NCBI GenBank assembly: GCA_964270895.1
Contig: OZ185435.1
Length of the DNA: 64,000 nt
Source of the DNA: Podarcis filfolensis
Lineage: Eukaryota
Reading direction: 5' to 3' (one strand)
Numbering within the stretch: the first letter of the stretch is position 1; each line of letters begins with the position of its first letter. The notes below the pieces were generated by a model. The model saw nothing but the letters and a program-made list of their open reading frames with translations, was not told the origin of the DNA and ran no database searches. Shown here piece by piece: positions 15,065 through 64,000 of this stretch. Both the position numbers and the translations under genes were made by a program.

Positions 15065-15529
<465 letters not shown>

Positions 15530-17675: not shown

Positions 17676-17676
17676 T

Positions 17677-18545: not shown

Positions 18546-18615
18546 GAAAGATAATCTGCAAAGCACATTAATTTTTTGGTTGAAGCACAACAGTTCCTTC
18601 TCCCATCTTCCTCAG

Positions 18616-20963: not shown

Positions 20964-21086
20964 GTTGCTTGAATGGCTGCCAGATGTCCCTGAGGATATC
21001 AGGTGGATGAAGGAGCAGACGAGGAAAGTCTGCCACTATCTGATGAGGAAAGCCAAGAAGAAGCTGGGAAGCCATCTCTCAGCCAG
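20964..21086 (+). CDS. PNPLA2: PNPLA2 exon 9: [41 protein letters not shown]
   Basis: Acceptor ctccttcag, donor GTAGGA; 123 nt. Confidence 0.96.
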
Positions 21087-21539
21087 GTAGGATTATCTTG
21101 TTTGCTTTTCTAAGTATTGCGACACTGGGAGTTGCCATAGGACTGGCGCCATATAAATGGTAATCAGGGGGACTTTGGCCTCCAATCTGACCATGCTTAT
21201 TCAGAAATCAGCCCCTTTGTACTCTCCTCCAAGTTTGTGTGCTTAAGATGGCAGTTCTAGATGTGTCATCTTACTTTGCACAGCTCTCTATAAAATAAAG
21301 GTGCCTTACTCTTCAGGAAGGTTTAGTGTTACTGTGCCTAGGTAACCGAATACATGGTTATGAAACTACAGTCAATTCCAGCACTGTGCACTTCTTTTTC
21401 AAGAAACCAAATAACCAAAAACCCAGGCTTGACAGTCCCCAGTTTTGTTTTGATGGTGAAATAACATAACTAAGTGCCTGAAGTCCTTAGATATTGTACG
21501 TAATATATTTGAAAGGGCCTAATTTTCTTTCCAAAGAAA

Positions 21540-21655
21540 GGGTGGTGTTCAACTAAGTTTTACTCCAGAGTTAAACCCATTGAAATTAATGAACCTGTTA
21601 GGGTCTTTGATTTCATTAGATCTACTCTGAGTAAAACTTAGATATAGTAGCACCC
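21540..21655. mobile_element. hairpin MITE-like element
   Basis: CTAAGTTTTACTC...GAGTAAAACTTAG inverted arms; same family as 43618. Confidence 0.7.
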
Positions 21656-23193
21656 CATATACAGAGTGTTCTGAAGAGCTATCTTGGATTAAGTTTAAAA
21701 CCCAAGCAACCCTCTTCAAATGCATCTATTTGCTCACTCTTGGTTCAGTTTCTTTTCTGCGTGTGAACATGTACCCAGGGCAGTTCAGGACAGTGGGCAA
21801 AAATGTATTGTGTGTGAACTGCCAAAAAGTGATTGGATGCTATCTCAAAGGTAGGAGGGGGATGGAGATAGCCATGGATGCTGGAAAACTGGCTTTGGGC
21901 TGAACATTGATTCTTGGTATAATAGTCGGTGGTCAATAGCATTGGCAGAGAAACTAACATGTCAGGTCAGAACAACAAAGGGCAAACACAATCCCTATTC
22001 TTTTTATAATACATGGCAAAAAAATCATTGAATATATAAATTGTTTGGATAGTGGTAGGAATCCACCTAACACTCACAGGGAAATGTGGTGTGATCTTTT
22101 AGAGTAACCAAATGAGATGTTGTATAGCATGACAAATGTATATGATTATATTGGGACGAGTTGTTTGTTATTTTCTACTTTAGCAATTGTTTATATGCTA
22201 ATAATAATAATGATAATAATAATACAACTTTTTAAAATGTAAGGGGGAGAGAAAGCCACTATGTATATATTTTTCCAACCTAACAACAGGGACCCTATTT
22301 CCCTTTAGTTTCCATTGAATGACTTATAAAATCGTTCGTTCCTGCAATAGCAGATGATTTTTATATGATCTTCCAATTCACACATTAATTTCTCAGGACA
22401 GTTCTGTATGTCAACTGTCAACCTGCAAAAAATATCAGGATGGTTTGTGCAGACGAATGTGTTGTTTGAAACAGCTTTCAGTAACAAAGCTGTCATTTAA
22501 TGTTTTACAATATAACAAATAGATGGTTTTTCAAGTGATTTGTTTGCATTTATCGTGTGACAATAAACAGTTACCACTTCAACGGGTGGCTCGTGCATTA
22601 CATCTGGGTGTCGCACAGTCCACTTGCACTCGGCGGGGTGCGGGTTTTATTGAGAGATAATGGAGCCCATTCTGCCAGTGGAGAATCTCATTTTGCAGAA
22701 CAGCCCACTCTATGCAGCTTGTGTTCTCACTTGTACACCTGACTCACTTTCTCAGACCGAATGAAACTCAGCAGTGTGACGACCGTCAGCCTGGGGACTC
22801 TGGAGGCTCAAAGTTTCCCCTGGACCTCAGTCAGCTCACGTGGCACTTTCTGCTTATGGGCCAATGACGGGACTAGGAAGGGGCAGGACTAGGATAGCCA
22901 GGGTGTCAAAGGTCAGTATTGAGGCATGCAAGGAGAATCTGAGCACTGCTCACCTGCACCTTCCATGATCCTAGCCTGTGCTGCTGACTTTTTGTATGTG
23001 ACGGTAGCATCACACTGGCATCTTGTACTGTTAAGGGGAAATTGCAATGAGGAATGTGTGATCTTTTATCCACCACTCCTCTCTCTGTATCTCCATGTCT
23101 AGCCTGGAAGCTCCAGTGCAGCAAGCAGCGCTTGTGAGTACAGCATGACAAACAAACTAAACCTCTTCCTCTCTCTCTTTCTCTCTCTCTCAG

Positions 23194-23458
23194 GCTGTAC
23201 TACCACCTGGAACTCAGAAAAAGCCAAAGCTTGCCCCTCCCCTTGAGCATCGGCTATGGGGAGGCGCTGCCCAAGTGGCTGCGGAGTAACCTCTCCCTGA
23301 CGGACGTTATGACAAAATGGGAGGAGTACCAGCGCCAGCTGATGCTGGGGTTGTTCTGCATTAACGTGGACCTGCAGGCGTCCATCTTCCCATCAGAAGG
23401 GCTCCAGATGAGGCACCCGCCAGCAAGCTGCACACAAGAAAGCCTCCAGCTTTTCTGA
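23194..23458 (+). CDS. PNPLA2: PNPLA2 last coding exon: [55 protein letters not shown]...LQLF*
   Basis: Long CT tract plus cag acceptor; QSLP and NLSL phosphosite motifs; TGA at 23456-23458. Confidence 0.95.
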
Positions 23459-24237
23459 TCTCGTTGCCACACTTTGGGCAGGGGAGGGTAGACAGCCGCT
23501 GCCTCTCAACAGCGTCCTAATGGAGCTGTAACACCTGCTAAGAGACTTCTTATTTTCTCATTTGCAGAGTGAGAATTTACATCAATATAGCCATTGTGCA
23601 ACTGCTAATCTGGTGGCTGCACAGTGTTCAAACCCATAGCAATGTGTCGGGCGTTGCGTACACTCTTAGAGATGATGGTGTATAAATGCCCAGCACATGT
23701 GACAAAAGTGCTTGGTCTCTTGGTTGAACCGAAAAGAGTTTTGCTTGGGACACCTTTTCAGAGGCCTCATATCATGTTGAACTTGCTGTTTGTGATAAGA
23801 GGATTGGGACACAAATCAGTACTCTGGCATTTCTTTGCTTTTAACCTCCTTTGTTTTACATTAGTGTTGTAAAAGGGTCTTTGTTTTGAAGGAAGCTGAG
23901 TCCCTCATAGATCATCTTTGCCTGTGCTACACTGAATAGTGTAAAGCAGGCAGGCTACAACAACTGGCTGCCAGATTGGCTCTTGTTATCTAAGGCAGCC
24001 CTTGGTTTTCAACTCTCAGCTGATGCACCTTTTTAAATGCCTGTGCCCCACATTCTCTTTCAAATCTCTCTGGGTGCCACTGCTCTTAATATAGATGTTA
24101 GGAATGTAGACATGTAAAAATGAACTCTTAGAACACTAGAGTTCCTTGTTCCTCTCAGGATCACCCTCTTCTAAGGGACTTTTTTTTTTAAACTATGGAG
24201 AGAGAAAATATTAGAAGCTCTGAAACATGCTTCGTAA

Positions 24238-29990: not shown

Positions 29991-30109
29991 CAACCATGGA
30001 TGGTAGCATTAAAAAGTAACATGCTTCTATGATATCCTGACCTAGATACTAACAACAGTCAAAGAAATGTAAGCCAGATTCCCATGGATTCCCCAGATTC
30101 CCTTAAGCT

Positions 30110-30370
30110 AAGGAAATGATTCTCAAAGGAGGCAGTGACAGCCACCAACATGGACGGAATTTAGACAAATTCATGGGGGATATCAATGGCTATTAACCTT
30201 GATGGTTATGCTCTGTCTCTACAGAGGCAATAAGGCTTCTGAATATCAGCAGCAGGAGCGGAGAGCGCGCTTGTGTTCAGGTCCCGCATGCGAGTTTGTA
30301 TCAGGCGCCTGGTTGGCCACTGTGCGAACAGGATGCTGGACTAGATCGCCGTATGTTCAAAGAAAGAACA
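30110..30370 (+). mobile_element. CR1-type LINE 3' end
   Basis: GGCAGTGACAGCCACCAAC...TTAGACAAATTCATGG...ATCAATGGCTATTA...CCTGGTTGGCCACTGTG. Confidence 0.65.
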
Positions 30371-30399
30371 AAAAGTCCTCATGGATGGCGGCCAATCCA

Positions 30400-31800
30400 C
30401 GACAGGTTATGCCGCTGCACCATGCGTTAGTCTTCAGGTGCCGCAGGATCGCTGCTGCTGCTGCTGCTCTGGGAGCTGCCACGAATCTAGGAAGAAGCAA
30501 GCCATAGTAAGTCCCTTTTAACTTATCTGCCCCTTCACTGCTTCCGCATACCGTCCGCGTCACTTTCAGACGTGCGCCGGACAGGGAGGGCAGCAGCTCC
30601 TGGCGCGGCGAGCGGTTTCCAAGCGCTGCCTTTCCTCCGCCTGGAATCCCTCTGGATCTGTTCTGTTCGATCGAGCCAGGCATTTCGCCACCGGCGCGGC
30701 TATATCTGTGCCCGCCTCCCAACCTCCCCCCCGCTTCCACCTCGGCCTTGGAAAAAGCAATACATTGACGCGGACGGGGCTGCTGGTACGTCAAGGTTAA
30801 TTCGCGCGCTCGGCCAACGGCTTCGCTGCGAGCATTCCCCGCCCGCGGCCCTTGGAGCCTCCCCGCTTCACAATTAGCTGGTCCCGAGGAGGAGGAGGAG
30901 AGCGGGGACCCGCCTGCAAACTTTTCGCGCGGCCCTGCACGTGCGCGCCCCCCAAAAGTGGGGCCCGCCTTGCGCGATAGCGCCTCATCCCAGCCACGCG
31001 CTACTCAGAAGGAAGCGCCGTCCAAGTTCAGCGGGGCTTCCTCGCGGGTAGCCGCTTATAGGGCGGCAAGCCCGGCTTCGACGCCTCGAGGCAGGGCCCG
31101 GGGCAGCTGCTGCAGCAGCAGGAAGAGGTTTGGACGCGGCTCTAACTGGCCACGAGGCGAGCTTCCTTTCCCCTCAAGCAGCCCCAGGGAAGCTGGCCCT
31201 GCCCCGCCGCACCTGCTGCGAACACGCTGTGCGCCAGGGAGAGAGAAAAAGTTCAAGCAACGACCGAAGGGTTTCCCTTCTTTCTTTTCCTCCCTCCTCA
31301 TCTGGCGAGTCCGGCTTCTCCAGGCATTTCCGGGTTGGGGGGGGGGAAAGAAAAGCCTCTCTCTGTTATTTTTCTGTTTGCACATCGATCCCAACTCTTT
31401 GGACTGCTGGGCTTTTGTTTAAGATCAGCGAAGGAAAAGAAATTTCCCTCCCCCTTCTGCGTCTCTTCTCCGGTGCCTTCAGGATCAGGGGTATAAGGTA
31501 ACGCCGGGAGCGATCGGAAACTTTGGGTCCCTCCCCCTTTCTGAGAAGATATCTATTAGAGGGTCTTGGGGGCCGTTTCTCTCGACCTACGTCTCACACG
31601 CATATCCAGGTGAGTTTGTGCGGCACCTCACCTGGCTAACGCCGCGGCTTCCCCTCGGAAAGGAACCACTCTTCCCACCTGCAGCCCCATCTGTGGTCTG
31701 CCTTGACCTGCGGACAGGTAGCTGGGAGGCGACGCCCCCGAAAGGCTTGCCGATAATGGCCATTGGAAGGAATGCGTCGGTATTACTTGCGAAAGGATGT
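30400..31800 (+). promoter_or_regulatory. CRACR2B: CpG island; probable CRACR2B promoter and non-coding first exon(s)
   Basis: Abrupt rise in CpG and GC content; GC boxes; E2F-like TTTCGCGC at 30923-30930; E-box CACGTG at 30938-30943; plus-strand donors AAG|GTAACG (31498) and CAG|GTGAGT (31610). Assignment to CRACR2B is an inference. Confidence 0.8.
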
Positions 31801-32485
31801 GATTATTGAGCTGTAGAAAGCTTCCTTTTGAGGTATCCGGAGCCTTCAGTGCCTCGAATGCGTCCTAATCGGCTGACAGAAAATTCCACGAAAGCTTATG
31901 GTGCTGGGCCACCCACCTCACTTACTTACGTGGCTCCTCTCCCCGATGAGATTTCTAGAGAGTCAGCTGTTTTCATTCTCTTTTAGCAAACACGTTAAAG
32001 ATTCTTGTGGCATCTTAGGTGTGTTAATAAACGCTAACAAACTGATAATGAGGTTTTGTGAACACAGAGCCACTTCTTCAGTGCAATCTTAGACGATAAG
32101 ATGGTGACTTTATTTAGTTATTTTGTTTATAACCACATTTTAAAAACTAAAATGCGTAATGTGGTTCTTTAGCAAAGCACTCCTGAACCTGCTATCTGAA
32201 AAAATCCTCTGGGTTAGTTCTTGTGCAGTGACAGGAAGAATTTCATCAGGTGAAGCTGAAATGGATGCGGTTCAGTACTGAGAAAACTGCAGGTGTCAAA
32301 CTCTTGCATTGTTCTTCACTGCAGTTCTTGCCACTCAAGAGTTGCCTGAGACACTGAAGTTTGGCAGGTGGTGCTTTTCCTGGTGTGGAAAGAAACATGA
32401 TGGGAAATGTGTCGCCTGCTAAAGTTAAGCGTAAAGGCATATGAGCAAGACCACAAAGGTGTTTGTGTGTGTGTGTTTAAGATTA

Positions 32486-45143: not shown

Positions 45144-45344
45144 ATGGAAAGACCTGGGGAAGAACTCTCTGAAAGTTCCCATGCGGAGGACAAGGAAGAG
45201 GATGGAGCAGCCTCAGGCATCTCTTCTTCTCTCTGCTTGAATGATGTGGGAAACATGCAGGTGGAGATGCTGGAGAAGGCCAGGGAGCTCTTCAGGCTCT
45301 GTGACAAGGAGGAGAAGGGCTTTATCACCAAGCTGGACATGCAG
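45144..45344 (+). CDS. CRACR2B: CRACR2B first coding exon: MERPGEEL...MLEKARELFRLCDKEEKGFITKLDMQ (EF-hand 1)
   Basis: ATG in strong context gcaATGg; acceptor tatttgcag ending at 45099; donor CAG|GTAAGC; 201 coding nt. The start codon choice is inferred. Confidence 0.9.
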
Positions 45345-47630: not shown

Positions 47631-47742
47631 CGGCTACAAAGTGAACTTCCTCTCACTCCTGAACAACTAGAATCTGTTTTTGACAGCCTAGAACAAGACA
47701 ATAATGGGTATCTCACGCCAGTTGAATTCAGTATGGGACTAG
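47631..47742 (+). CDS. CRACR2B: CRACR2B exon: RLQSELPLTPEQLESVFDSLEQDNNGYLTPVEFSMGL(G) (EF-hand 2)
   Basis: Long pyrimidine tract plus cag; donor GTAAGA; 112 nt. Confidence 0.96.
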
Positions 47743-47834
47743 GTAAGAGGAATGAGGGAGTGTGAAGCTCAGTGGCTATATGGAGAAAATGACAACTACT
47801 GTTGCTTAGCATGTATGTGGGCAGTGGACAGAAT

Positions 47835-48036
47835 GGGAAGAAATGGCCTTAGCTCAGTGGTAGAGTTTCTGCCTTGCATGCAGAGGGCCACAAATTCAAT
47901 CCCCAGCATCTCCAGGTAGGACTGGGAGAGGTTTCTTGCTGAAAACCCTGGAGAGCTGCTGCCAGTCAGTGTGGACAGTACTGACCTAGATGGACCAGTG
48001 AGTCTGATACAGTATAAGGCAGCTTCCTGTGTTCTT
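47835..48036 (+). mobile_element. near full-length tRNA-derived SINE (Squam3-like)
   Basis: tRNA-like head TAGCTCAGTGGTAGAG...TTCAATCCC, a body, and the tail ATAAGGCAGCTTCCTGTGTTC. Confidence 0.85.
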
Positions 48037-48198
48037 AACATAAATATTTTCCTTCCTTGGAATACTGGCAGTTTACCGTATATTAGGCAGCCAAGGCAAC
48101 TGCAGAGAATTAAGGAACTGTGGTATTGAGATAGAAACCCAGGGACCAGATTCAATACTCCTACATGGCAAATGTTATTTTTGCTAAATATAAAGCAG

Positions 48199-48209
48199 GC
48201 GTGCGCGCA

Positions 48210-48250
<41 letters not shown>
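48199..48250. repeat. compound (CG)n(CA)n alternating purine-pyrimidine tract
   Basis: GCGTGCGCGCATGCGCGCGCGC(AC)n ATATAT. Similar tracts at 52826-52850 and 58852-58896. Confidence 0.9.
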
Positions 48251-49780
48251 GAGAATGATGTGCAGCTTCTGGGGCTGTCTTTGCCATACATGCTTTCAAA
48301 CTTATCTCCAAAAGTGCAGTTCTTGGAGTAGTGAATTCCTGTATATTGCACCAGATTTCATGCTTGCACAGCATGATTGTGGAACGTGCACCCACCCTAC
48401 TGGTGAGCAATGCTGAGGTGGGGCTATATCATGCCATACACTCACTGTTTCTGCTGAGAAGGCTCTTTCCAATGCTTCCAGTTCAGCGCTCAAGCACGCA
48501 GCTCCTGTGGAGACATTGTGCAGCAGCCACCGCAGAGAGATCCACCTGCAGCAAAGTGCAGCCGAAGCTTTTTTGCCAAGTATGAGCTGCATGAGGGAGG
48601 GTTTTTCTTTCTTTCTATGGCCCTGTGCTGATTAGAAGAAGCCAAGTTCCTTTTTTCTCCTTAAGAAAACAGCTTTAAGTCAACAGTTCCAGGAATCTGA
48701 CGAAGATTCCAGGAAGAGTGCTGATCAAAGCTATCAGGAGTGGGGAGTTAGGCAAGAAGGTAACGGCAGGCTCTAATTTGAACTAGAACACAGTCATGTT
48801 CGTAGTGTGTTTTGCACAAGCCATAAATGTCGTGGTGTCCTAAAGCTCAGTGGGTAACATCTGGAATTGGACCGACCTGTATTGACATTGTGCAATTGTG
48901 CCAGTCCCCAGTCTCTAAGGCCAGAGTGGTTAACTCTTAAAACAACCATACTTTAATGGATCAAACCAATGATGGGTTGGGGAGGGCTGTGTATCAGGCT
49001 GTATTGCCTTTTTCATTTAGTAAGTTCTAAAGTGTGACAGATATTGTGCTGCTGTGCATTAAAAGTCTTCATATGGGCAAAGTAAGAAACCATAAGGCAT
49101 TTTAATTTAAAGGTGTTTTCTATAAAGAGAAGCTTATTGCAATATATGTTTTAGTCAGATGGTTATTTTTTAGTTTTACCCTCCCCTATGTACCAGTCCG
49201 TATGCAAAGATAAAACTTTAATTTTTATTTCTGTTTTTATTGTCCTTTCTGTTAGAAGTTACACATTTTGGGGGGGGGGGTAACACTATGGAAGTCTCTC
49301 AAACTTGGCATTGTTTAGAGCCTCAGCATGTATTAATCTGGCCCTGATCACTTACCTGGAAGTAAGACCCATTGAATTCAAGTGGGGCTCATTTCTGAGT
49401 AGACATGTATAGAACTCCATGGTAAATGCGTTGTTTAAAGTCCAGGACGCAGTCCTTGAACCTGTTTTGAGTGGAACGGCTTACCCTTGGAACATTTGGA
49501 ATAACAAAAGTGATATGGAGTAATGCAGAGTGCCTTTGAGCATGTGAAGAGCTTCCTTCCTTCATTACAGAAGTGAACCATGGTTCTGTGTTTGAAGTGG
49601 ACCAGTTCCAGTTCTTTTAATTTTTACTGTTGCCCTGATTTGGCTAAAAGAGGAAGGAGTCTGATATGGAGCTTGTGGATTTCACAAGCTCTCTCCCCTC
49701 ATAATTCAAACACTGATGCAAGCCATACCTGGGATTAGAGAGATCTTATAGTCCTTTGTTTTTCTCATTCCACTGACTAG

Positions 49781-49937
49781 GCAAATTCATAGGGATTGAG
49801 CAGTATGAGAGCTCTGGAAGCACCAGGCACGAGGAGACTTTTGAGTCAGGCTGGTCAGATGACTTGGACCAGGAAGAGGAAGAGAAGAGGTTTTGCTCCA
49901 TGTTGGAGCAGCTCGAAGCATCCCAGGTCTTTGAAGA
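49781..49937 (+). CDS. CRACR2B: CRACR2B exon: (G)KFIGIEQYESSGSTRHEETFESGWSDDLDQEEEEKRFCSMLEQLEASQVFE(D)
   Basis: Acceptor gactag, donor GTAAGT; 157 nt; phase 1 to 2. The ORF track shows a different frame here. Confidence 0.93.
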
Positions 49938-49973
49938 GTAAGTTGGAACTTTCCAACCTGTGCATGTTTATTA

Positions 49974-50196
49974 CAGTGGTACTTTGGTTTAAGAACAGCT
50001 TAGTTTATGAACAACTTGGATTAAGAACACTGCAAACCCAGAAGTAGGTGTTTTGGTTTGTGAATTTTGCCTTGGAAGTAGAACATGTTCTGCTTCCTGT
50101 TGAGTGTGTTCCATTTGTAAATTGAGTCCCACGCTGCTAGGGGAAAGCACGCCTTGGTTTAAGAACGGGTTAAGTTCGTAAACCAAGGTACCACTG
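49974..50196. mobile_element. Tigger-type MITE (second family)
   Basis: TIRs CAGTGGTACTTTGGTTTA / TAAACCAAGGTACCACTG, TA on both sides. Confidence 0.88.
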
Positions 50197-50668
50197 TATT
50201 ACGATTGCTGTTGCTATCTTTAGGAATCTTGTTTTGCAGAAGCATTGCTTTGACCCTTTCTATCTATCATGTCCTCTTCATTAATATGCATGTGCTATGT
50301 TTTCCTGGGTTGCATTGCTACAACAGGAATGGGGAACCTGTGGTCTTCCAGATGATGTTGGGACTAGCATGGGTAGCAGTGGACTAGTAGAAAGGGATGG
50401 GTGTATTAGGAGCATAATAAGGCTCGGACAAAATCACATAGGGGAAGAGATTCTCCAACAGTGTATACATGTTCAGATGCATCTTTACTTTTTAAGATGA
50501 GGACTTTTGACCTCTTATTTCCTGGATTTTCTCATCTCAGGGAGGGATGACTAGGAGGCTTAACTATAAAGTACTTTAGAATAAGTTCTTTATAGCCTGT
50601 TTGGTGCAAGGACTATGCTTATCTATTACTCTCAAGCTAATAAACTTTACTGTTTGTCTTTGCTCCAG

Positions 50669-50815
50669 TCAGAACGAGGTTCAGGAGCTCTGGGCTCAAC
50701 TCCGGAAAGAAAAGCCAGAACTCCTAACCAGTTTTGAAGAATTTCTCTTCCACATTTCCTCATATGTCAGGGACATACATCACGAGAAGGAATCAATTGA
50801 GCAGGCGTTGAAACG
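50669..50815 (+). CDS. CRACR2B: CRACR2B exon: QNEVQELWAQLRKEKPELLTSFEEFLFHISSYVRDIHHEKESIEQALK(R)
   Basis: Acceptor tgctccag, donor GTAAGC; 147 nt. Confidence 0.95.
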
Positions 50816-51370
50816 GTAAGCAGTTTCTGGACATCATGTGACTACGCCATAGAAAGTGCAATGCAGTCTTAGGATGCTGTAAGTGGGAGGGAAAGTTTCA
50901 CTCAGCATCCACAAGAGGATTCGTGAATGCCAAAGAAGGAGGTGGAAGTGTCCAAATGCCTTCAGCGGGACCTATTGCTCTATGAATATTTTCTTCCTCT
51001 ATAACCCAATCACACCTGCAGCAAACAGGCTGTGCACACACTAAAATTTTGTCTGTATCCAGTGTGCTTCCACCACTAGTTTAGGAAGCGGTGTACACAC
51101 AGTGTTAGCCACGATCCACTTCCATCTGGTACTTATCCTGTCATTGCTTTTGAAATACTGTTTTGATATATTTTCCCACAACGCTCCCCTTCCAAAAAAA
51201 CGCAAAAACCTTCCCCAGCTTCAACCCAGATTGGGAAAAAGAACAGACTAGCTGTTTTTTAAGCTAGTAATGTGTACACAGCCTTAGTCTAACCTTAAAC
51301 AGCATAAGCAGTCGGGTTACAAAAGTTTCCTGAGAAAATCTTCTCAATGTGTAGCTTTTTAAGCCTTTCT

Positions 51371-51387
51371 GGCGCCCCCTAGTGCCA
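51371..51387 (-). promoter_or_regulatory. CTCF core motif
   Basis: Minus strand TGGCACTAGGGGGCGCC, one mismatch from the core CCACTAGGGGGCGC. Confidence 0.55.
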
Positions 51388-51579
51388 GAGGATTTCCATA
51401 TCAATACTCAAGTTCCTGAAAAGTGAGACAGCACATCTTATGTTAGCTGAGATGTATTTATTTTCTTTCAAAGTGGAGAGGCAATTCTCTCTCTTCCCCA
51501 CCCCCAAATCCCATCTCCCACTTTGTCTTTACGCTGTATCTGTTCCTTGCATTTCATCCCTCTTGCTCTGTGCTTTTAG

Positions 51580-51670
51580 GAGGGAGGTAGACCATGACCG
51601 CGAAATCAGGTGCCTTTATGAAGAAATGGAGCAACAAATCAAAGCAGAAAGGGAGCGGCTGCTGAGCCAG
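51580..51670 (+). CDS. CRACR2B: CRACR2B exon: REVDHDREIRCLYEEMEQQIKAERERLLSQ (coiled coil)
   Basis: Acceptor cttttag, donor GTAAAC; 91 nt. The LYEEMEQQI motif is typical of the large-Rab coiled coil. Confidence 0.96.
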
Positions 51671-51833
51671 GTAAACACCTCATTCCTTCACTCTCAGGAT
51701 GCCTGAGCTAGACACTGAGCTCAGTTGCTAAATCAATGAGCCACATCCTTCCAAAGTGCCTGAGATTTATTTTTATGCTGAACGTTGGAGTGAAGAAAAA
51801 AACGAAAAGCACCAATTTATCTGCTTTTTGCAG

Positions 51834-51926
51834 GGATCAATGAAGCATGAGAAGAGCAGCTTGCTTCAGAAAGAGCTGCAGAGCAAAGAACAAGAATTTG
51901 AGAAGATGTTGTACCACCAGAAAAAG
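51834..51926 (+). CDS. CRACR2B: CRACR2B exon: GSMKHEKSSLLQKELQSKEQEFEKMLYHQKK
   Basis: Acceptor tttttgcag, donor GTGACT; 93 nt. Confidence 0.93.
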
Positions 51927-52686
51927 GTGACTTGGAGGGGGTGACCCTTGTTTCTTTTGCTTGGATTTGGATTTTACCCTCCACATTGTCTACACAGGTC
52001 CCGTTGAACTGGCTGGCAGTGTCTTTTGACACCAAAGTCATCGCTTCTTACACATGTACAGGGCTAGAGCTGGATTTGGGCTCTTGTGCCTGAGATGCCA
52101 CCTTCGCCCCAGCTCCTGCTGGTTCCTGTTGGTGTTACAAGAAAAACCAGTGCCAAAAGCCTTCATTGTAGGGAAACAGACAGCATTGCATACTCTGCTG
52201 TGACCAGCTGTTTCACTTCTGCAAGTCATGGGAAGCCCTGAAGTGATGAGTAGACATATGTGAGTGCCCCCCAGTATATAAGATACTTTAGGGAAGGGAA
52301 ATTCTTCTCACTGTTCTCCTCCCCACCCTCCATCAGCACCAGACAGACTAGGTGTGCTAAAGGAGGAAAAACTCTCAAATCCTCAAATGCATCAGCTGTC
52401 GGAGAATCAGTGCCCTGTAAGGTGGGGAGCAAGTAATTTTTTGGAGGGGCTCCTTGGCCCAGTGTAGGAGCTGCCTGTGATTATTTTATCTCTCCAGCCT
52501 TATTCTTCAGTGGCTTAAGGGACTTGTAGGAATACAATAAGAGCCCCTGCCAGATCAGGCCAAAGGCCTCTCCAGTCCAGTATGGGAAGCCCACAAGCAG
52601 GATAGGAGTGTAACACTCTCCTTCGCATGTATTCCCCAGCAACCGGCGTACAGAGACACATACTGCCTCTAATACATGCTCTACAC

Positions 52687-52822
52687 TAGTGTTTCCCAAA
52701 CTTGGGTCTCTGGCTGGTTTTGGACTACAATTCCCATCATCCCTATCTAGCAGGACCAGTAGTCAGGGTTGATGGGAATTGTAGTCCAAAAACAGCTGGA
52801 GACCCAAATTTGGGAAACACTG
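52687..52822. mobile_element. palindromic hAT MITE
   Basis: AGTGTTTCCCAAACTTGGGTCTC / GAGACCCAAATTTGGGAAACACT; degenerate TSD CTCTACAC/CTCTGCGC. Confidence 0.85.
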
Positions 52823-52852
52823 CTCTGCGCGCGCACACACACACACACACCC

Positions 52853-53210
52853 GGCCTTCATGTCCAGTAGCCATTAGCCATTTATAGCTTTATCCTCCAG
52901 GAGTTTGTCGAATTCCCTTTTAATGGTCACCACCACCACTTCTTGTAGGAGTGAATTCCATAGTTCAATCTTGCACTTGGTGAAGAACTTCTTTTCTGGC
53001 TGCCTTGACTCTCCCACCCTTCAGCTTCCCTGAATGATGTTGGATTCTGGTAATCTATAAGGGAGGGAAAAATTATATTCTCTTTCTCCGTGCTTTGCAT
53101 TATATGAAACATCTTGCGTCATGACCCCACCACAACCACTGTCCTTTCCCTGACAAGCTAAAAAACCCTGAGCATTGTAACCTCTTCTCATAGAGGAGTT
53201 GCTCCAGTTC
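52853..53210 (-). mobile_element. CR1-type LINE 3' fragment
   Basis: Reverse complement of the CR1 end (TAGCCATT...CCTCCAGGAGTTTGTC...GAATTCCATAGTT). Confidence 0.6.
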
Positions 53211-53799
53211 ACCAATAATTTGGCTTGTCCTTTTCTGCACCTTTAGATTCATCTGTACACTTGCATAAGACACAGTGTCCTCCTTTAACCTCCAAGGCCC
53301 ACAACTTTAGTATGTGATGCCAGCCCCATTCATATTTTAGCTCCAAACAGGTGACTCCACCTCCACCAACCCAAGGAAGGCCATCTGCTCTGTTTGCACA
53401 TGACGTTATCATCGTGCCATAATATCCTCTTAAAGGAATGCGGCTGAGAGATAACACTGTGTAATTTGCGTTATTGGTGCAGTTTGGGTAAGTCCAGTGT
53501 CAGTATTTGCTCTGGGTTGTTTAAAAACTAAAGAGCAGTTACGTTGGGGCAAAACAACAGAGAGGAGATTAAGAATTCCCCCATCTGGGTTTTCTCAGTT
53601 CAGGGTCCCTTCCAACTCTTCAATTCTATGACTCTGAGGTTACCCACTCATGTGACCAACAGACATATAGATTAGGACCACAAAAGACAACTTCACAATA
53701 GGGAATGAAAATGCAGCTAAAAGGTCTTTGGGGTATTGGTACAATGGTAATTACTGTACCCCTGCAGTGCAGGAATCTCAGCTACAGCATCCATGACAG

Positions 53800-53950
53800 A
53801 TGGCCCCCCAACCTCTGCTTATAAACCTCCAGTTCACCACCTTCCAAGGGAATCGCTTCCACGGTCAAACAGTCCTTACTGTGAGAAAGGTCTTCCTGAT
53901 GTTTAGTTGGACTTTCCTTTCTAGTAACTTAAATCCATTGGTTCAGGTCC
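53800..53950 (-). mobile_element. CR1 ORF2 C-terminal remnant
   Basis: Minus strand reads as RTNGFKL...LNIRKTFLTVRTV.PW, like the CR1 ORF2 C-terminus. Confidence 0.6.
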
Positions 53951-54159
53951 TTAACATGTTATCATTATTACTTGAATGCATTGCATCTTAAAAAAAACCA
54001 CAGATGTATTGCTCTGCTTTCTGTTTTCCATTGTGCAACTTTTTTTTTAATTTAACATATTCCCCTACAGCTCAAAGCTGCTTGCAGACACTGGCTACTG
54101 ATGCCTTTGTACTTTTGGTTTTTCAGAACTGTTCATCTTGATTTCTTACATATTTTTAG

Positions 54160-54347
54160 CTGGAACATCAGTTACAATCCCAGAGCTCAGAGCAGCTGGA
54201 AATGCGGGTGCAAAATGAGAGGTTGAAAATCTTGAACGACAATCTCCTGGACCAACTGGAGAGAAGCAAATGGGAGCTGGAGGTAGCCCGAGGTCACCTG
54301 CAACAGCTGCAGAAAGAAGCCCAGCTAGAGCAGGAACAGAAAAACAG
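54160..54347 (+). CDS. CRACR2B: CRACR2B exon: LEHQLQSQSSEQLEMRVQNERLKILNDNLLDQLERSKWELEVARGHLQQLQKEAQLEQEQKN(R)
   Basis: Acceptor tatttttag, donor AG|GTGTGT; 188 nt; heptad pattern. Confidence 0.94.
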
Positions 54348-54890
54348 GTGTGTTGGGGTGGGGCTGTAGAACATGCAATGAAAAGTGCCAGTTGCTTTTG
54401 CTGTGTGATGCTGGTTTACGCTAATTAGTTAATCAGTGGGACTACAGAATGTAGAAATGAATAGCAATAATATGTGGCTACTGCAAACTGCAGTACTGGC
54501 AGTATTTTCAGGTGCCACATAATACCTGGTCTGCATTTGTAAAAAATTGATCTTTTGGTGTGGCAGCACCTACATTTTTGAACTCTCTGACTATTGACAT
54601 CAGACAGGTCCCTTCACTGTACTCTTTTCAGTGCCTGCTAAAAGTGTTTTTGTTTAGGCAAGCCTTACCCAGATATGTAGACAACCACCTTGAGGTTGTT
54701 GTTGTTGTTGTTTTACAGTCAAGTGTTACATTATTTTTATGAAATAAAATTAAAGGGGGTCTGTAAGTACGTACACTTTCTAGCTTCCAGGACTGAGTTA
54801 AAGGATTAGAACATGCATGATGTTTTTATTCTCTTCCACAAATCTACTTCCTATGTGGCCTTGAGATAGTAACATTTCTTTTCTCTCTGT

Positions 54891-55018
54891 CAGGGGTAGC
54901 TAACGTTGTGCCATTTAGATGTTCTTAGACTCCAGTTCCCATCGGCCCCAGTCAGCATGGACAATGATGGGAGATGGAGTCCAACGATATCTGGAAGGTA
55001 GCGCATTGGCTATCCCGG
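54891..55018. mobile_element. degenerate hAT MITE
   Basis: CAGGGGTAGC...GCTATCCCGG ends, and an inner AGATG...ATCTGGA hairpin like that of 6612-6747. Confidence 0.55.
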
Positions 55019-55908
55019 CTCTGTATAAACTAGAGATAAAAATAATAATTTTTATATAAATATAAATATTTCCTGGTTACATTTCCTAGAAGACCATGAT
55101 AGAAATGGCTCGGAAAGCAAGCCCCACAGCAATTCACCATAAAAGGTCAATCCAAATCTTGTATTGTCGAAACCACGGCTCCTACCAGTCTGAGAACAAA
55201 CAATGTGGCAAACAATAACACTGATCTCCACAGCAATCAGTCAGATTACTGTTCAGAATGTATGATGTCACTGCAAATTGGGCAACCTTTTGCTTTATTG
55301 AAGAGTAAATCTACTTTCTAATACTGAATTGGCCAAAACATGACTTGAGTTATAAACCGGGATAAGAATTTGGACGCAACGTCTGCAGAACAATTAGATC
55401 CCAGTAGGTAGATCTTCAGCCACCTTTTCTTCTCAGATACAAAGTCCCAAATGGTACAGTGGTGTTGTTTTTAGTAATAATAATTTAAAAAATCTAGAGC
55501 TGATGTAGGCATTTTAACTTAAATGCAGTATGCACAGTTGACATTCTTTTTCTTATTTTGAACTGTATGCAAACATAGACTAATGGATCATTTTTAACAG
55601 GAAAGGCTGCTTTGGGAGGTGGAGTGATTGGGGAGCAGAGCAGTGTGGTGGGTGCAAAAAGGGTGCGTGTAAATTTGGTCCTCAGCTGGAATTTCTCTTG
55701 GAAACCAAGAGAATGATATTTTGCATCAGCAAGTCATGGAGAGCAAGAATGGGAGTCAGCTCCTAACCCAGTGTTAATTTAATTAGTCCACCCTCTGCCC
55801 TTGATTGCTGCCAGCAGCTTTGGCATTTGGGTCATATTATCAACGTTTGCACAGGACAAAACTTGTAGCCCTTAAAACATTAACCCTCCCTTCCCCTTTT
55901 AAATGTAG

Positions 55909-55980
55909 GGATGTATTCAGAGTCTCTAAGAATATGCAGAAAGAAAAGAAAAGCCTCCTGCGACAACTGGAACTGCTCAG
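55909..55980 (+). CDS. CRACR2B: CRACR2B exon: DVFRVSKNMQKEKKSLLRQLELL(R)
   Basis: Acceptor aatgtag, donor GTAAAG; 72 nt. Confidence 0.96.
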
Positions 55981-56214
55981 GTAAAGGTGGGGGCATCTTG
56001 ACATCTGCTCTTCACCATCTGCCTTGAGGGCTTGTTCACATGTATAGGGAGGTATAGAATAAAAAAGCTCCTTGGTGTTATGTCAGCTATTCAAACAAAA
56101 CCAGCAGAATTGGCGAGACCCACAGGGCTGCCACTTGACCTAAGCAGCAAGCTGTACAGGGGCCAGTGCTTTGGGTGATTCAGGTCCCCAGTGGCAATAG
56201 ATGGTGCTAAAGTA

Positions 56215-56455
56215 CAGTCATACCTCAGGTTGAATGTGCTTCAGGTTGAGCGCATTCGAGTTGTGCTCCACGGCAACCCAGAAGTAATGGAGCACGTTAC
56301 TTCCAGGTTTTGCCGCTCGCACATGCGCAGACGCTCAAAATGACGTCATGCGCGGAAGCGGCAACATGCGCAGACGCGCCGTCGCATCTTATGCTGTGTT
56401 CAGGATGCAAACAGGGCTCTGGAATGGATCCCGTTCACATCCCGAGGTTCTACTG
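56215..56455. mobile_element. Tigger-type MITE (third family, CpG-rich)
   Basis: TA|CAGTCATACCTC...GAGGTTCTACTG|TA. Confidence 0.8.
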
Positions 56456-56668
56456 TAATGTCTGAGAGCAGCACCAAAGCAATTTCTGCAGTGAAGATTT
56501 AGGCCACATGATGCTTCTGTGAAAACTGAATGGGGATTTGTGGTTGCGAAAAGGAGTGGTGTCTTCCCCTTTCTCACTTCTCTTTGAGGATTGTTAGTTC
56601 CCTACCGTAGTATGTGTAGAGCAACAGCTACTGCTTACCTCTGTGTGTCTTTCTTTCCTTTGGAGCAG

Positions 56669-56825
56669 AGAGATGAACAAGAAGCTGCGAGACGAGAGAG
56701 ATGCCTTTGAAGCCAAGAAGCTGGTTAGTCTGAGAAAGAAAATTCTAATCCCCCGTCGCCTCCCCTTTGCAGCTTGCTGTTGTTGCCATCACTTGGGGTC
56801 ATTTCATTTACAGGGGGGGCATTGA
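56669..56825 (+). CDS. CRACR2B: CRACR2B composite exon. 56669-56723 is shared (EMNKKLRDERDAFEAKKL); read-through to the stop gives the short-isoform tail VSLRKKILIPRRLPFAACCCCHHLGSFHLQGGH*
   Basis: Acceptor ggagcag; internal donor CTG|GTTAGT at 56724; TGA at 56823-56825. Short CDS totals 1218 nt = 405 aa. Confidence 0.9.
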
Positions 56826-58851
56826 CTGAGAAACCCTGTAGTGCCTGCATGTGGACTTATTATTATTATTTTTAAGAGAGAGCTGCACATTTTTAAACCA
56901 GGCAATTACAAAGGGGGCAATAAGGACTGCTGGCTCCTGACTCTACAAGAAAGCGTTTACAGTTGGGTGTCCCTCCAACCTGGAGGGGGAGAAAATCTTT
57001 TGCACATCTTGAACTTTGTACACTAAGGCTTCCATTCAGAGGAACCGTAGCTGAACCTCCATGTTTTAAGGCTGAGCCATTGCCACCTAGCTTGGAGAAG
57101 GCCCAGTTACGTTCTTTCTCTTCCCACCACCACCATTCTGCAGAGTAGTCTGGAATTCATCTCTGGAACCACCTTGCCTCATTCCAGCCTATAGTTCTTC
57201 TGTTATATCACCTTGTGCCTATATCCTTCTAGGCTTCCATTGTCATGCAGCCCACAATTAAGAGACTGAAAACAAGATGTCTTTTTGTCTGTTTCTGCCT
57301 CTTAGTTTGGCCTGCTCCTGGAATGGGCCTTTTCCATCCCTGGGCAGTTTGTTTTTGGTAGGAGAGATGTAATGTCCACAAAACATACCACTTAGTAGAT
57401 TTGATCGTAGACCAATGAGGCAGACAACCAAAATGTGAAGATGAGCCAAAAGACCTCTTGCTGCTGATTTCCCTGCTCCACAAATGCAGGGCAGGAATGA
57501 AGTATAAAGGGGGGGGGGTGTATGCTGATCAGCTATCTAGTCTTTAGTGTTGTACAAGCGTAGGGTGGATGTTTTTATTGAAGCTGCTATGTATGTTTTT
57601 GTGTAAAAAGGAGAGGGAAGTTTCCAGTGCAATGTTCTAGTCTTTGGGTATGATTGTGCAAACATATGTGCACCTGTCTGTCCATGGGTGGCCCATCCTG
57701 TTTTGTCCCTCCCCAACACACACTGCTGCTGCCTCCCCACTGAAGCCTTGCTTACCTAGGAGTGGAGAGAGAGAAACTCCAAAGCTGAGCAAGTGTGAGC
57801 TGTTCTACAAAGCTTTGCTGCAGGCCTCTCCTACTCGCCTAGAAGGGAGCGTTCCAGCTGCAGTGGAAGTGGTGGGGCAGGCGGAGAGCCGGTGGGGCAC
57901 CGCCTTTTGTGTTTCCACCACCAGAGGTGGCTTCTTTACCTTGCCTTATGAGTGGGCTGGCTCTCTGGCTGTCCCATGACTCATCTTTCTGATTACTAGG
58001 CCTGTGGCTGCATCTCCAGATAAATCTGGGGGCATGTGATCTCCATAGTCTCAATGATATCATTAAATGTAGCAGAAGCAATAGGGAGAAACTGTCTTCT
58101 GCTGTTGCAGTTCAGAGAGAGCAATGCAGGGAGTTCTCAGATCCTATTTGGCACTTTAATGTCTTTTTTGAAGAGCATCCCTTTCATGCTGTACCGTGGG
58201 ATACGTTTTAGAACTCTTGAGTGGGGTCGCATTGAAAGCAATTTACAGTATGGCATGGAGGGACGTGGAGAGACTTCATATGGACATAAATTGGTTTTTC
58301 TTCACATGTCGAAGTAGTCGCTGGATGGTCCCTTTGGCAGTCTGCTATCTCTGTTCTCTAGTGGAATATGGGCTCCAGGCAAGCTACAATGGCTTTTGTT
58401 GTCTGATCCTCTTTGAAAAGTAAATATTAATGAGATGGAGGTTCTGTTGGATACTGGGAAGAAAGGCACCCACCACTCTTCATGCAGATTGCATCTGATG
58501 TGGGAATTCAAAAAGAGCAAGCTTTTGATCTGCATACAGTCATTCTGCAGATTTAAAGAACTGATATAGTGCAGAAACAAATAATATAACACTGTGGACT
58601 GTGCTTGCATAAAGGCAGGTTGCATGGGTTAGAGTTAGCACATCAGACTCTTGAAGTAAAATGTAAACCTTCAGTTAATGGAAAAAAGGATCCTTATTTG
58701 TTTCTATTTTTTAAACATCCCCCCTTTTTTCTGAACCTCAGTCTTGTATCAAGATGTACCAACTACAGCTATGCTGGATGAACTGGAATGAAGGAAGTTG
58801 AGTTCTAATTTTTCTAGGGGGGGGAAATATGTTGCATTATCTTCCTGTCAA

Positions 58852-58862
58852 CTATATATGCG

Positions 58863-58895
<33 letters not shown>

Positions 58896-58896
58896 G
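58852..58896. repeat. (TA)n(GC)n(AC)n compound microsatellite
   Basis: Direct inspection. Confidence 0.9.
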
Positions 58897-60532
58897 ATAT
58901 CTGCTCATGCTAACTGCAATTTGCAGCAATCTATCCATTGCAAGAGTGCGCAGTAGAATAGGAAAAAACAAAAGATGTCTGTTTGCCTTAGTTAAAAAAA
59001 GTATGGTGTTTCTAGAAAGCTTTTTCTACCATCAAAGAGAATTATCAAGGAGAAAAGAAGTCTGCTGATGCAGCAGCAACTTCCTGTCTTGAAGCCTCTT
59101 GATGATGGGCCCTTTGTATATTTCTCTTTTGTCCAAGACTGCAGTGCTTGTGTCTGTCTGTTGGAGCATCTGCAGGCTGTTGCTTTTCTAAGATAGAGAA
59201 GAGCACAAACTCCAGTGCACACGTGGGGTATACTGGCATAATGTGGATCTAGTGAGGTTTTTGGTTTTAAAGCCTGAAGGGCCTTCCTAGCCTGATGTTT
59301 CTGTTGCTGTTAGATTTGCAACTGTACTGTTTTTAGCTAGAGATTACTGGTTGGTAGTCAATACCAGTCTTCATTCACTGTGACGTAATGATGGACCAGT
59401 CAGGTTGCCAGAGTTTAACAGTGCATCATTCTTTAGGAGAGATATCTGGCTTGTTCTTGCCTGCACGTTTATGGCAGTTTGCCAGCGCTGCAAGACATAT
59501 TTCCAAGTCTGCTTCAACATATAACAGGGAGACCTTGCAATAGTGAAATATTAAAATCTTCTAAATACGCCAAGACTGTTTATGCATAAATGCCAGCACT
59601 GGAAATCATTTGGCACTGTGAGGGAGAAGGCCAAACTGGACGAAAGAGATCTGAGTGGATCCATGCACACTTAAATGGGAGGAAATGTCCTGCTGGATGA
59701 AGAGCTTGAACTTTGATTTCGGTTTCTGCCAAAATCTTTAATGCTTCAGTCAGCACAGTACATAGGCAAGACAAGAGTTAAAAGGCACAGCAGGTGCCTT
59801 GCATGGCGAAGTGCAGCTAAGACATTGATCCAGCAGGTGATTTGCCCCCTGCTTCATCCTTTTGAAGAGATTGCAGTGGGCACATCTGAGTTCTCAGATT
59901 GGACCAAGCAATCAGGCACTCCAGTCCTAGTCTAATTTGCTCACAGATGCTTCTAAAAGCATTTCGAAAGAGTTTTCCAACGTTTACTCTAGTAAGGCCC
60001 TGAGATACTGTGCAAAACTAGGACAGTTGAAGCACAGTGTGGAAACTCTGCTGATACCTTTACAAGTTCCAAGGCTGCAGAGGACTACTCGGCTCCTTGC
60101 ATCTTCTTTTCCTCTGCCAATCCCTTCAGGTCCCCAGTTGTTCATTAATCCGGATTACCACCCTAAACATTCTGAAGTTTTGAAATTGATATTTGGAAAC
60201 ATCGTGCCTTGAGCTTCTGCATTTTGTACTGCGCTTTGTTGTACCGCTGTGTGTTATGAATGGAAACTGAGTTTCCCCAAGTCCATACATCCACAAGTTT
60301 TGGAGGGAGTTGCGTGCCATGTACAATCTGGTCCTTTGTGTGTCCCTTAATGAGAAACCTGCATGCACCTTCCAGAAGTCTAGGAACCGGTCTCCAGGTA
60401 CAACCCATTCATTCACAGGTCTAGTTACAGTATATGTGTCTTTGGTATGTGTTTATGACAAATATGATGATGGCAAAATACTGCAAAATTCATGCTGTTG
60501 TTGGAATGTGAGCCTGTGATCCAGACTTCCAT

Positions 60533-60901
60533 AATAAAATGCCATGCACCCTGTTATCGTTCTCATCAAATATTTCATGCTTGTGTGTTCTGTCATTGCA
60601 ATGCAATATTCCTTTATCGTCTGTTTTTAAATGCTAATGTTACACTGAGCCAATAAAAGCTGGCAAGAGCTAGAGAAACAGCCAGGAAACAATTGTCTCT
60701 TTCGTGCTCATGTTCCATTGCGTAAAGTGTTTCTTTTGTATGACTGTATTATGACAGACCATTTAGAGGTCCAATGAGATGGTTAAGACTGGGTTCTGAG
60801 TCTGCCCAAAGCACACAATAAAACCCACTTGAATGAAACAACTAATATATTTATGAATAATCTTTCCATTCATCATTCTAAACCGTATTCAGCACAATAA
60901 A
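60533..60901 (+). terminator. CRACR2B: candidate intronic poly(A) signal cluster for the short CRACR2B isoform
   Basis: AATAAA at 60533, 60652, 60817 and 60896; GU-rich TGTGTGTTCTGT about 45 nt after the first. Confidence 0.45.
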
Positions 60902-61272
60902 TGTCCCATTATGATTAATCTGTTGTGAGCGATCCACACAACTTTGGAAGCAGGGTGCAGAACTGTTACATCTCTGGGATGCATTTTAAAGCTGGGAAAT
61001 TGTACTTTCACCCTGAGAATGCATTCTTTGCTATTGGAATTTAAATTTTAAATATAAATAACAAGTGGGGTACTGAAGTACCGTAAGTTGAGTACTTTCT
61101 GTATGCCAAACCCAAAACTGAAAAACCTTTTAATGTCTCATCAGCCACAAAATGGCAGCTCCTGGGGTAATCTTGACTAACTATTGGAGAGCCTCTCCCA
61201 AAGTGACATGGTGGTTGTTTTTTCTTAATTTACTTAGATGACAGATTCCAAATTGCTCTCTCTAATTTTCAG

Positions 61273-61352
61273 GCACTTGAAAGCAAAAGACCCCTCTTGA
61301 AGAAGGGGTCAGCGATAGGCAAATACCTAGTGGAGGAGAAGCCAGTCAAACG
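61273..61352 (+). CDS. CRACR2B: CRACR2B long-isoform exon: ALESKRPLLKKGSAIGKYLVEEKPVK(R)
   Basis: Acceptor aattttcag; phase 0 matches the 56724 donor. KKGSAIGKY resembles KKRSGSVIGKY in CRACR2A (recalled). Donor CG|GTCAGA; 80 nt. Confidence 0.88.
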
Positions 61353-62167
61353 GTCAGAGCTCAATATGTTGTGTTGTGTCCCGCTGCATGCTGTCGGTCT
61401 GTAGTCACCACAGTCGGTCTGTTGGGTCACACTGTTCTCTCCCTTTCTCCTCTTCAGCTGAACTAAGGTTGAGGCAATGGGTGTCCTTGGGGAATTGCCC
61501 TTTGATGAACTTGGGACTGTGGGGCACTGGTGACTGAATGAGACTGTGTAGGTGGGTAGGAGGGGGTGAGTCTAATTTTGATAACAAGGAGATTCAACAT
61601 ATACACACCCTCAAGTTTCCTACATTGCATGCATTTAGAGAGGAGGGGCAGAACACCATAAGCAAAGTTATTTAACACATTTCTGAACTATGTGAGCAGC
61701 CCTGGCCTCCTTTGGGATGGTAATATGTAAATATAGAGCACAGATAGGCATATTGGATAATCAAGGCAGTTTGCCAAAAATTATGAACCTCTGGCCCTGT
61801 CCACACCTCCACATGTTAATTGTTCATTTGTTTTGTTCATGCATTCATTTCTGTGGGTGTTGACACTTCTTGGAGCTCATCCAAAAGTACAATTCTCAGT
61901 GTCCCATCTAGTGGAGCCCCAAGAGGCAAAACCAATTTAAAAACCAGCATACATTTGTAGTGTGGATATGCCTTAGGGATTCTGGAACCCATTGATATAC
62001 CTGCTGCTGCTCCTCTCCTCCCTCCTCACATTTTAAGATTGTTGGTTTCCTGTCCTCATCAGTGCTGACGTTACATGAAAGTATGGGTAAGTTTTCTGTA
62101 AATGCTGATGTTGTTTGTGCTGATGCTTTTGGACATTTCTTCCCATCGTTTGTGTGCCTTGGCACAG

Positions 62168-62459
62168 GCAGCTTGCTCCAGGAAGTACTCCCCTTGTCCT
62201 GCCAAAAGATTTTTATTTGGAAGAGAAAAACTGTAAACTCTTCCTGACCAACACTGCCAGTTTGAAGCAGGGAAGAGGAATCAATTCATCTGTGGAGGAC
62301 TATGCGGTTCTTAGGAAAACAGAGAGGCAGGAAACAGCAGGAAATGTTGGGAAGCCAAAGTCTCTGATGAAGACCAGCACATTCCAGAGAGAAAAGACCA
62401 ACAGACCTAATTATCTTCATTTATCGCCAAGAAGGCTGCCCATTGGTAATGAAACTGTG
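62168..62459 (+). CDS. CRACR2B: CRACR2B long-isoform linker exon: QLAPGSTPLVLPKDFY...LHLSPRRLPIGNETV
   Basis: Acceptor ggcacag, phase 2 in and phase 0 out; 292 nt open; donor GTG|GTGAGT. SPRRLPIGNE resembles SPRGQPVGKE in CRACR2A (recalled). Confidence 0.82.
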
Positions 62460-63678: not shown

Positions 63679-63814
63679 GTATTGGAGCCAGCTAGTTCTT
63701 CTCCTGACCGTGTCTTCAAAGTAGTGTTTCTTGGTAATTCCGGAGTTGGCAAGAGCACCTTCATCCATCGCTTCTGCTACAATAGATTCCTGGCTGGGAT
63801 CAGCTCAACTATTG
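63679..63814 (+). CDS. CRACR2B: CRACR2B long-isoform exon, start of the Rab GTPase domain: VLEPASSSPDRVFKVVFLGNSGVGKSTFIHRFCYNRFLAGISSTI(G)
   Basis: Acceptor acatccag, donor G|GTAACT; 136 nt. Contains G1 GxxxxGKS/T and the switch-I Thr in STIG. Confidence 0.95.
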
Positions 63815-64000
63815 GTAACTGAGGCTCCCAAACTGCAGAAAGGAGAGGCATAAGGGAATTTAAGAAGTGCTTAAGTGAGGCTTGTGCCATGTGCTCAACA
63901 ACTTCTGCAGCAGAAATATTTGTGAACTACACCCCCCCCTTTTCAGTTCTACTGTAAACATGGCAATATTCCCCATGGACATGCCACACTATGTATTCCT

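Follow-up and report, generated by a model that had tools for sequence, protein, structure and literature searches.

The C-terminus of CRACR2B in the lizard Podarcis filfolensis is most likely determined by a choice between splicing and intronic polyadenylation. In the window, the whole 64,000-nucleotide stretch of DNA that was analysed, the sequence from 56669 to about 60685 or 60839 is read as a composite terminal exon, a reading given a probability of roughly 0.85. If the 5′ splice site at 56723/56724 is left unused, 33 more codons would be read to the TGA at 56823–25, and the unspliced transcript would be cleaved after the AATAAA at 60652 or 60817. The short product would be a protein of 405 residues (372 + 33) that contains EF-hands, a coiled coil, and a tail consisting of a basic patch plus CCCC. 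If the site is used instead, exon 9 would be joined to exon 10 at 61273 to yield a large Rab GTPase of ~700 residues with a CCX prenylation motif at its end. Splicing and intronic polyadenylation would compete for the outcome, with the hexamer GTTAGT doubling as donor and as Val-Ser codons. Read-through transcripts appear to end at poly(A) signals within the intron, and the decision is therefore one of splicing against polyadenylation, as opposed to simple intron retention.

The window gene is, by identity and synteny, the orthologue of CRACR2B (EFCAB4A). The window sequence is free of any N. Among its open frames on the + strand, those at 45.1 and 47.6 kb are EF-hand exons, those from 50.7 to 56.7 kb encode the coiled coil, and one at 63.7 kb holds the Ras/Roc P-loop. 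When exon 4 was searched against the full library, EFCAB4A (= CRACR2B) proteins were returned, with 82% identity to that of Elgaria. Comparison of the Podarcis muralis EFCAB4A protein (P0207) with the window by tblastn gave 97–98% identity over exons 1–12, and the splice-refined window model equals the Podarcis protein exactly at each junction (Table 1). Exons 2–8 encode the second EF-hand and the coiled coil, and the Rab domain past exon 12 extends beyond the window end. The EF-hand Pfam scores of single-exon fragments lie below the cut-offs; for the full Podarcis protein, EF-hand_6 is above its cut-off and two other EF-hand models are just under theirs. The EFCAB4A helical family was not reported by the copy of Pfam used, even for the full Podarcis protein.

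Table 1. Features of the CRACR2B locus in the window
Feature	Position	Strand	Basis
Exon 1, coding part (start codon, first EF-hand)	45144..45344	+	tblastn with P0207 residues 1-67, 98.5% identity; weak EF-hand Pfam matches
Exons 2-5 (of the exons 2-8 block, 47631..55980)	47631-47742, 49781-49937, 50669-50815, 51580-51670	+	Splice-refined model
Exons 6-8 (of the exons 2-8 block)	51834-51926, 54160-54347, 55909-55980	+	Splice-refined model
Exon 9, coding, common to both isoforms, ..REMNKKLRDERDAFEAKKL	56669..56723	+	Sequence; RNA contigs join 55980/81 to 56669/70
5′ splice site CTG/GTTAGT, also Leu-Val-Ser codons of the putative short isoform	56721..56729	+	GT at 56724-25
Read-through coding extension, 33 codons + TGA	56724..56825	+	Frame, conservation, unbroken cover by spliced contigs (X1 record 1, X5 record 22)
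Short-isoform 3′ UTR, ~3.9-4.0 kb; also most of the long-isoform intron 9	56826..60839	+	RNA contigs
AATAAA, proximal poly(A) signal	60652..60657	+	X1 and X5 contigs end at 60683 and 60685; same spacing kept in Podarcis
AATAAA, distal poly(A) signal	60817..60822	+	X13 and X18 contigs end at 60834 and 60839; same spacing kept in Podarcis
Exon 10, first long-isoform-specific exon, ALESKRPLLKKGSAIGKYLVEEKPVK	61273..61352	+	tblastn with P0207, 96% identity; phase 0 acceptor fits phase 0 end of exon 9
Exon 11, linker between coiled coil and Rab domain	62168..62459	+	tblastn with P0207, splice-refined model
Exon 12, start of Rab GTPase domain, P-loop GNSGVGKS (G1 motif)	63679..63816	+	Pfam Ras and Roc matches; 98% identity to P0207

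Upstream of CRACR2B lies a gene of the patatin family (PNPLA2-like; window 11492–23470, + strand), whose terminal exons (20271–20429, 20965–21087, and 23198–23469) match the gene found upstream of CRACR2B in possum and sandgrouse. Pfam left the single-exon patatin fragments unscored. Mammals are known to have the same PNPLA2-CRACR2B neighbourhood. A GC-rich island (30001–32000; GC 0.56 against ~0.43 around it) lies in the interval that separates the patatin-like gene from the start codon of CRACR2B (45144) and may represent the CRACR2B promoter and a non-coding first exon. In a transcript contig from RNA run X1, ~450 nt of the upstream sequence is not explained by coding exons.

Exon 9 is 55 bases long, the acceptor AG before it ends at 56668, and the exon closes on the donor CTG/GTTAGT. 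The original prediction had placed this exon, its donor, and the open frame correctly, and the 33-residue extension that it described is exact, with the frame at 56724–56822 and the codons of CCCC at 56775–56786. The tail begins with a basic patch (LRKK..), continues with CCCC and HH, and ends in ..GGH. The donor matches U1 at seven of nine positions, with mismatches at −2 and +3, and its score is the second lowest among the 11 donors of the gene by an approximate weight matrix. The lowest belongs to exon 10 (ACG/GTCAGA, 61350–61358), which has a C at +3. The exon 9 donor is thus suboptimal, as had been proposed, but to call it the single weak donor of the gene is too strong, since the exon 10 donor scores lower, and that description is rejected. 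The suboptimal donor of exon 9 may control the isoform choice, and the donor of exon 10 may form a second regulatable step toward the long form.

An open frame past a donor is not rare by itself. The chance that 33 codons remain open is (61/64)^33, or ~0.2, and the weight of the finding therefore lies on comparison and on RNA. As chance alone would open such a frame in about 1 of 5 cases, one could suppose that the frame is a chance opening in an intron, seen through ordinary retention or pre-mRNA, or that the region is conserved as a non-coding intronic splicing element. Comparison among sauropsids opposes this. The genomes of eight sauropsids (the window, Podarcis, Elgaria, Anolis, Paroedura, Alligator, Chelonia, and Pterocles) all have the 33-codon frame after exon 9, with the stop in the same place, even though six of the seven comparison genomes are annotated with the long Rab form only and the tail frame opens what is there called an intron. 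Pairwise dN/dS of the tail is 0.09–0.66 in the 25 of 28 pairs for which it could be computed; the pairs are non-independent and the figures descriptive. Variable sites by codon position number 17, 17, and 27 of 33 among the eight sequences, so that third positions vary most, and, with one exception, stops interrupt the other two frames of the region. The tail is 59–98% identical at the nucleotide level across the eight, and between families the flanks (300 bases past the stop and the upstream intron) reach only ~60–72% identity or align over a few bases. The pattern is that of translated sequence under purifying selection, which is the outcome for the codon-level conservation across 56724–56825 that the original prediction had put forward as a check.

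The same peptide is the accepted C-terminus of the mammalian protein, which also speaks against a chance frame. A homologous tail directly follows the same exon in short EFCAB4A proteins of echidna (P0006) and possum (P0043) and in isoform X2 of a turtle (P0084). It is further present in short proteins of sandgrouse, songbirds, snakes, geckos, a caecilian, a newt, many frogs, and ~100 placentals, and it occurs in every mammal among the matches listed. Every short-form tail has a short basic stretch followed by 3–7 Cys, and all except that of possum have G-(S)-G-H or a similar motif near the end. Comparisons with mammals were made with non-human proteins and with the echidna and possum loci. 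The mammalian-type tail cited in the original prediction is matched by database proteins, for example that of horse (P0121), and the proposed homology between the lizard tail and the mammalian CRACR2B C-terminus holds across tetrapods, as seen in the eight of eight genomes, the dN/dS values, and the database proteins. A word search with exon 9 plus the tail (51 residues), run against proteins of 29–89 residues only, returned no match, and Pfam gave nothing useful on the tail. In the gar Atractosteus spatula, the EFC4A model P0072 reads through the same junction into VSFRQRLL.P.., like the start of the tetrapod tail, with no Cys run after it in the part seen. The start of the tail may predate tetrapods, or the gar model may be wrong.

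Transcripts that carry the tail are found in assembled RNA. Logan contigs of four runs from four organisms were aligned to 55800–61799 and are ~97% identical to the window; they derive from close relatives, which are not demonstrably the window's own species. The run type was guessed as RNA, and the contigs show splice joints, so the runs are RNA. Record 1 of X1 (3776 nt) and record 22 of X5 lack intron 8 (688 bases) and join 55907–55981 to 56670, and the loose end that precedes 55907 in X1 record 1 corresponds to the end of exon 7. Record 8 of X13 has the intron 8 junction only. After the removal of intron 8, X1 record 1 is unbroken over 56670–58849, through the donor, the tail, and 2.1 kb further, and X5 record 22 is unbroken over 56670–57901. 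Since upstream introns are removed in contigs that continue unbroken past the donor, the read-through product is a spliced mRNA, and the read-through that had been predicted is seen in spliced RNA. No differences are listed within 56670–56885 of the relatives' contigs, against ~2.7% just downstream. The one-base offset of the joint probably arises because the relatives carry G in place of the window's A at 56669, as Elgaria does, which would be a synonymous change in an Arg codon.

The contigs also outline the end of the short mRNA. They break at a CA/TG microsatellite (58850–58904) in the short-isoform 3′ UTR, a stretch that was skipped in the alignment. Past it, cover runs from 58905 to 60683/60685 in X1 and X5 or to 60834/60839 in X13 and X18. 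In the four runs the contig ends fall 16–30 nt past the AATAAA signals, although a contig does not strictly fix a 3′ end and none of these contigs showed a poly(A) tail. X1 and X5 have zero depth over 60800–61799. X18 has lower-depth cover over 60820–61786, from either pre-mRNA or transcripts that extend beyond the poly(A) sites. The last exon of the short mRNA would be exon 9 plus ~4 kb, ending ~430–590 bases before exon 10. An incidental feature of the same alignments is a repeat in intron 8 (56213–56477), which has very high summed depth and many loose ends in all four runs; in a contig of organism C, precisely this 265-base stretch is missing. The repeat looks like a recently inserted, widely transcribed SINE-like element.

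These data bear on the supposition of a chance or non-coding frame from both sides. Contigs give neither levels nor strict ends, which leaves it some room. Against it, the upstream introns are fully removed in the very contigs that contain the tail, and cover stops just past the AATAAA signals. Taken with the identical frame length and stop in the eight sauropsids and a dN/dS well under 1, this makes such an explanation very improbable, and a chance frame, plain intron retention, and non-coding conservation are all rejected.

The alternative outcome, the long Rab form, is best documented in annotated proteins. Exons 10–12 of the window are intact, in phase, and 96–98% identical to Podarcis P0207, and the Elgaria and Podarcis proteins continue after exon 9 into exons 10, 11, and 12. 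Judging from annotated long forms such as P0207, the exon 9–10 junction is probably used in the window species. A CCX prenylation motif (..GCCL) closes the orthologues P0001 and P0207; the corresponding last exon of the window gene lies beyond the window end. Annotated long EFCAB4A proteins, with the Rab domain complete, come from lizards, turtles, crocodilians, birds, sharks, rays, and lungfish, and also from bichir, sturgeon, bowfin, and teleosts. This wide occurrence outside mammals indicates that the Rab module is ancestral for CRACR2B. No long EFCAB4A of a mammal or an amphibian is found among the best 120 matches.

It could be argued that the short Cys-tailed form is the only real product, with the Rab exons little used or transcribed from a promoter of their own, so that no switch exists. 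The RNA lends this some weight: no exon 9–10 joint occurs in contigs of the four runs, which by their nature cannot show absence, and the read-through form is assembled in three (X13 with just the intron 8 junction). Snakes and geckos, moreover, are annotated with short forms only. What counts against a short-only gene is the preservation of the Rab exons described above, together with long models that join exactly exons 9–12 in lizards, turtles, crocodilians, birds, and fish. In addition, every genome with Rab exons retains the donor GT, and echidna, most placentals, and frogs have lost it. A gene with only the short output is accordingly considered unlikely, and the competition between splicing and polyadenylation is retained as the preferred reading.

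The fate of the donor differs among lineages. GTTAGT (GTTAGC in the bird) is invariant in the eight sauropsid genomes and in possum. At the donor position the sequence is ATGAAT in echidna and GATACA in Hyla, and most placental tails begin with Gly, the GT being lost. Survival of the GT in mammals, raised as a question by the original prediction, therefore has a mixed answer, as possum keeps it and echidna and most placentals do not. The tail adjoins the same exon without a break in both echidna and possum. No Rab-like exon is present in possum between CRACR2B and the next gene, a tetraspanin; within 10 kb downstream, no Rab exons were found in echidna, sandgrouse, or Hyla, the next gene being reached in possum only. 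Because the tail is contiguous in echidna and possum and the Rab exons are absent in possum, mammalian CRACR2B looks like the read-through form made permanent, as had been suggested for the human protein. Decay of the GT would fit a constraint that was lost once the Rab exons were gone. Anuran tails, as seen in Hyla sarda (L009, 50788–50802) and in frog proteins, start with Asp (GAT/GAC) and are without the GT. Frogs may, with low confidence, have lost the Rab module independently, since they have no GT, no Rab exon in 10 kb, and no long form listed.

The Val codon of the hexamer has T at its third base in all nine GT-bearing sequences, and GTA or GTG there would be synonymous and would also make a consensus donor. 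That this base is held at T to keep the donor weak is suggestive only, because six of the 33 third positions are invariant anyway. These observations can be joined into one evolutionary scheme, for which the odds appear about even. CRACR2B would ancestrally be a gene of two outputs, in which splicing or polyadenylation at the dual-coding GTTAGT picks either an S-acylated, Cys-cluster, Ca2+-sensing coiled-coil adaptor or a large Rab that is geranylgeranylated and GTP-switched. In mammals, and probably in a separate event in frogs, the polyadenylated form would have become fixed and the Rab exons lost, with decay of the GT following; the T of the Val codon may keep the donor weak.

The closest known system is the paralogue CRACR2A, a single gene that gives the short CRACR2A-S/c (395 aa) and the long CRACR2A-L/a, or Rab46 (731 aa) (PMC8303950, PMC6504896). 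Like CRACR2B, it encodes EF-hands, a coiled coil, and an optional linker and Rab domain with a CCX prenyl motif, so that CRACR2A and lizard CRACR2B would be alike in deriving a Rab-less Ca2+ adaptor and a large Rab from one gene. The short ends differ, as CRACR2A-like short forms (P0040 and the partial model P0055) diverge one exon earlier, after ..LDFLR, and are without the Cys cluster. Among mammals, both forms persist for CRACR2A but only the short form for CRACR2B. Mammalian CRACR2B (~395–400 aa) resembles the lizard gene in its synteny with a patatin-family gene, in its exon structure, and in a C-terminal basic patch, poly-Cys run, and G-S-G-H that are homologous to the lizard tail. It differs in the absence of the Rab exons, which is shown for possum up to the next gene, and placental tails are a few residues longer than that of the lizard (..LPSAR).

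A second parallel concerns the mechanism. The secreted/membrane switch of immunoglobulin mu, like other composite terminal exons, sets a suboptimal 5′ splice site, placed within a coding exon or at its end, against a downstream intronic poly(A) site and changes both the C-terminus and the membrane attachment of the product. Lizard CRACR2B would be similar in that splicing competes with intronic polyadenylation. Unlike immunoglobulin mu, both outcomes of CRACR2B would be cytosolic proteins anchored by lipid, either S-acyl or geranylgeranyl.

The role of the tail is most likely S-palmitoylation, as the original prediction had proposed, and the Cys run is regarded, with somewhat better than even confidence, as a candidate membrane anchor. 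It stands beside a basic patch (LRKK.., then CCCC) in a soluble coiled-coil protein, and 3–7 Cys are kept across tetrapods. S-acylated clusters, such as those of cysteine-string protein, SNAP-25, and phospholipid scramblase 1, typically consist of adjacent Cys by a basic patch. The likeness to these proteins, in adjacent Cys by basic or hydrophobic residues and no transmembrane segment, is one of resemblance only. The searched literature held nothing linking CRACR2B or EFCAB4A to palmitoylation.

The same residues could also be read as a Cys-His cluster (CCCC-HH ... H ... GGH) that binds metal or forms redox-sensitive disulfides, in which case the tail would be a sensor or interaction module and not a lipid anchor. 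His residues flank the Cys run in sauropsids, a monotreme, and amphibians, and lizard through placentals retain the G-(S)-G-H motif near the end, both of which such a role would accommodate. However, four to seven adjacent Cys by a basic patch are characteristic of S-acylated clusters, and a variable Cys number (3–7) is easier to reconcile with a lipid cluster than with a fixed coordination geometry. A metal or redox role is for these reasons considered rather unlikely, and S-palmitoylation is preferred.

CRACR2B is almost unstudied. Short and long models from various non-mammals are already in public databases, and the searched literature is silent on a Rab domain in CRACR2B, on two outputs, and on a Cys tail; reviews of large Rab GTPases name only Rab44, Rab45, and Rab46. 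The Rab-less mammalian CRACR2B would be one of two ancient outputs of a large-Rab gene, and its Cys-rich end, kept for >300 million years, points to a membrane-anchoring or sensing role. In non-mammalian vertebrates, the choice at one splice site between a Rab-less adaptor and a Rab would be available as a natural system. The results also correct annotation, as lacertid models list the long form only and RNA assemblies show the short form. A codon repeat of human CRACR2B has been used as a reporter for codon-repeat-associated ribosomal frameshifting, with ~3% efficiency (PMC12809536); the lizard Cys run is encoded by mixed TGC and TGT codons.
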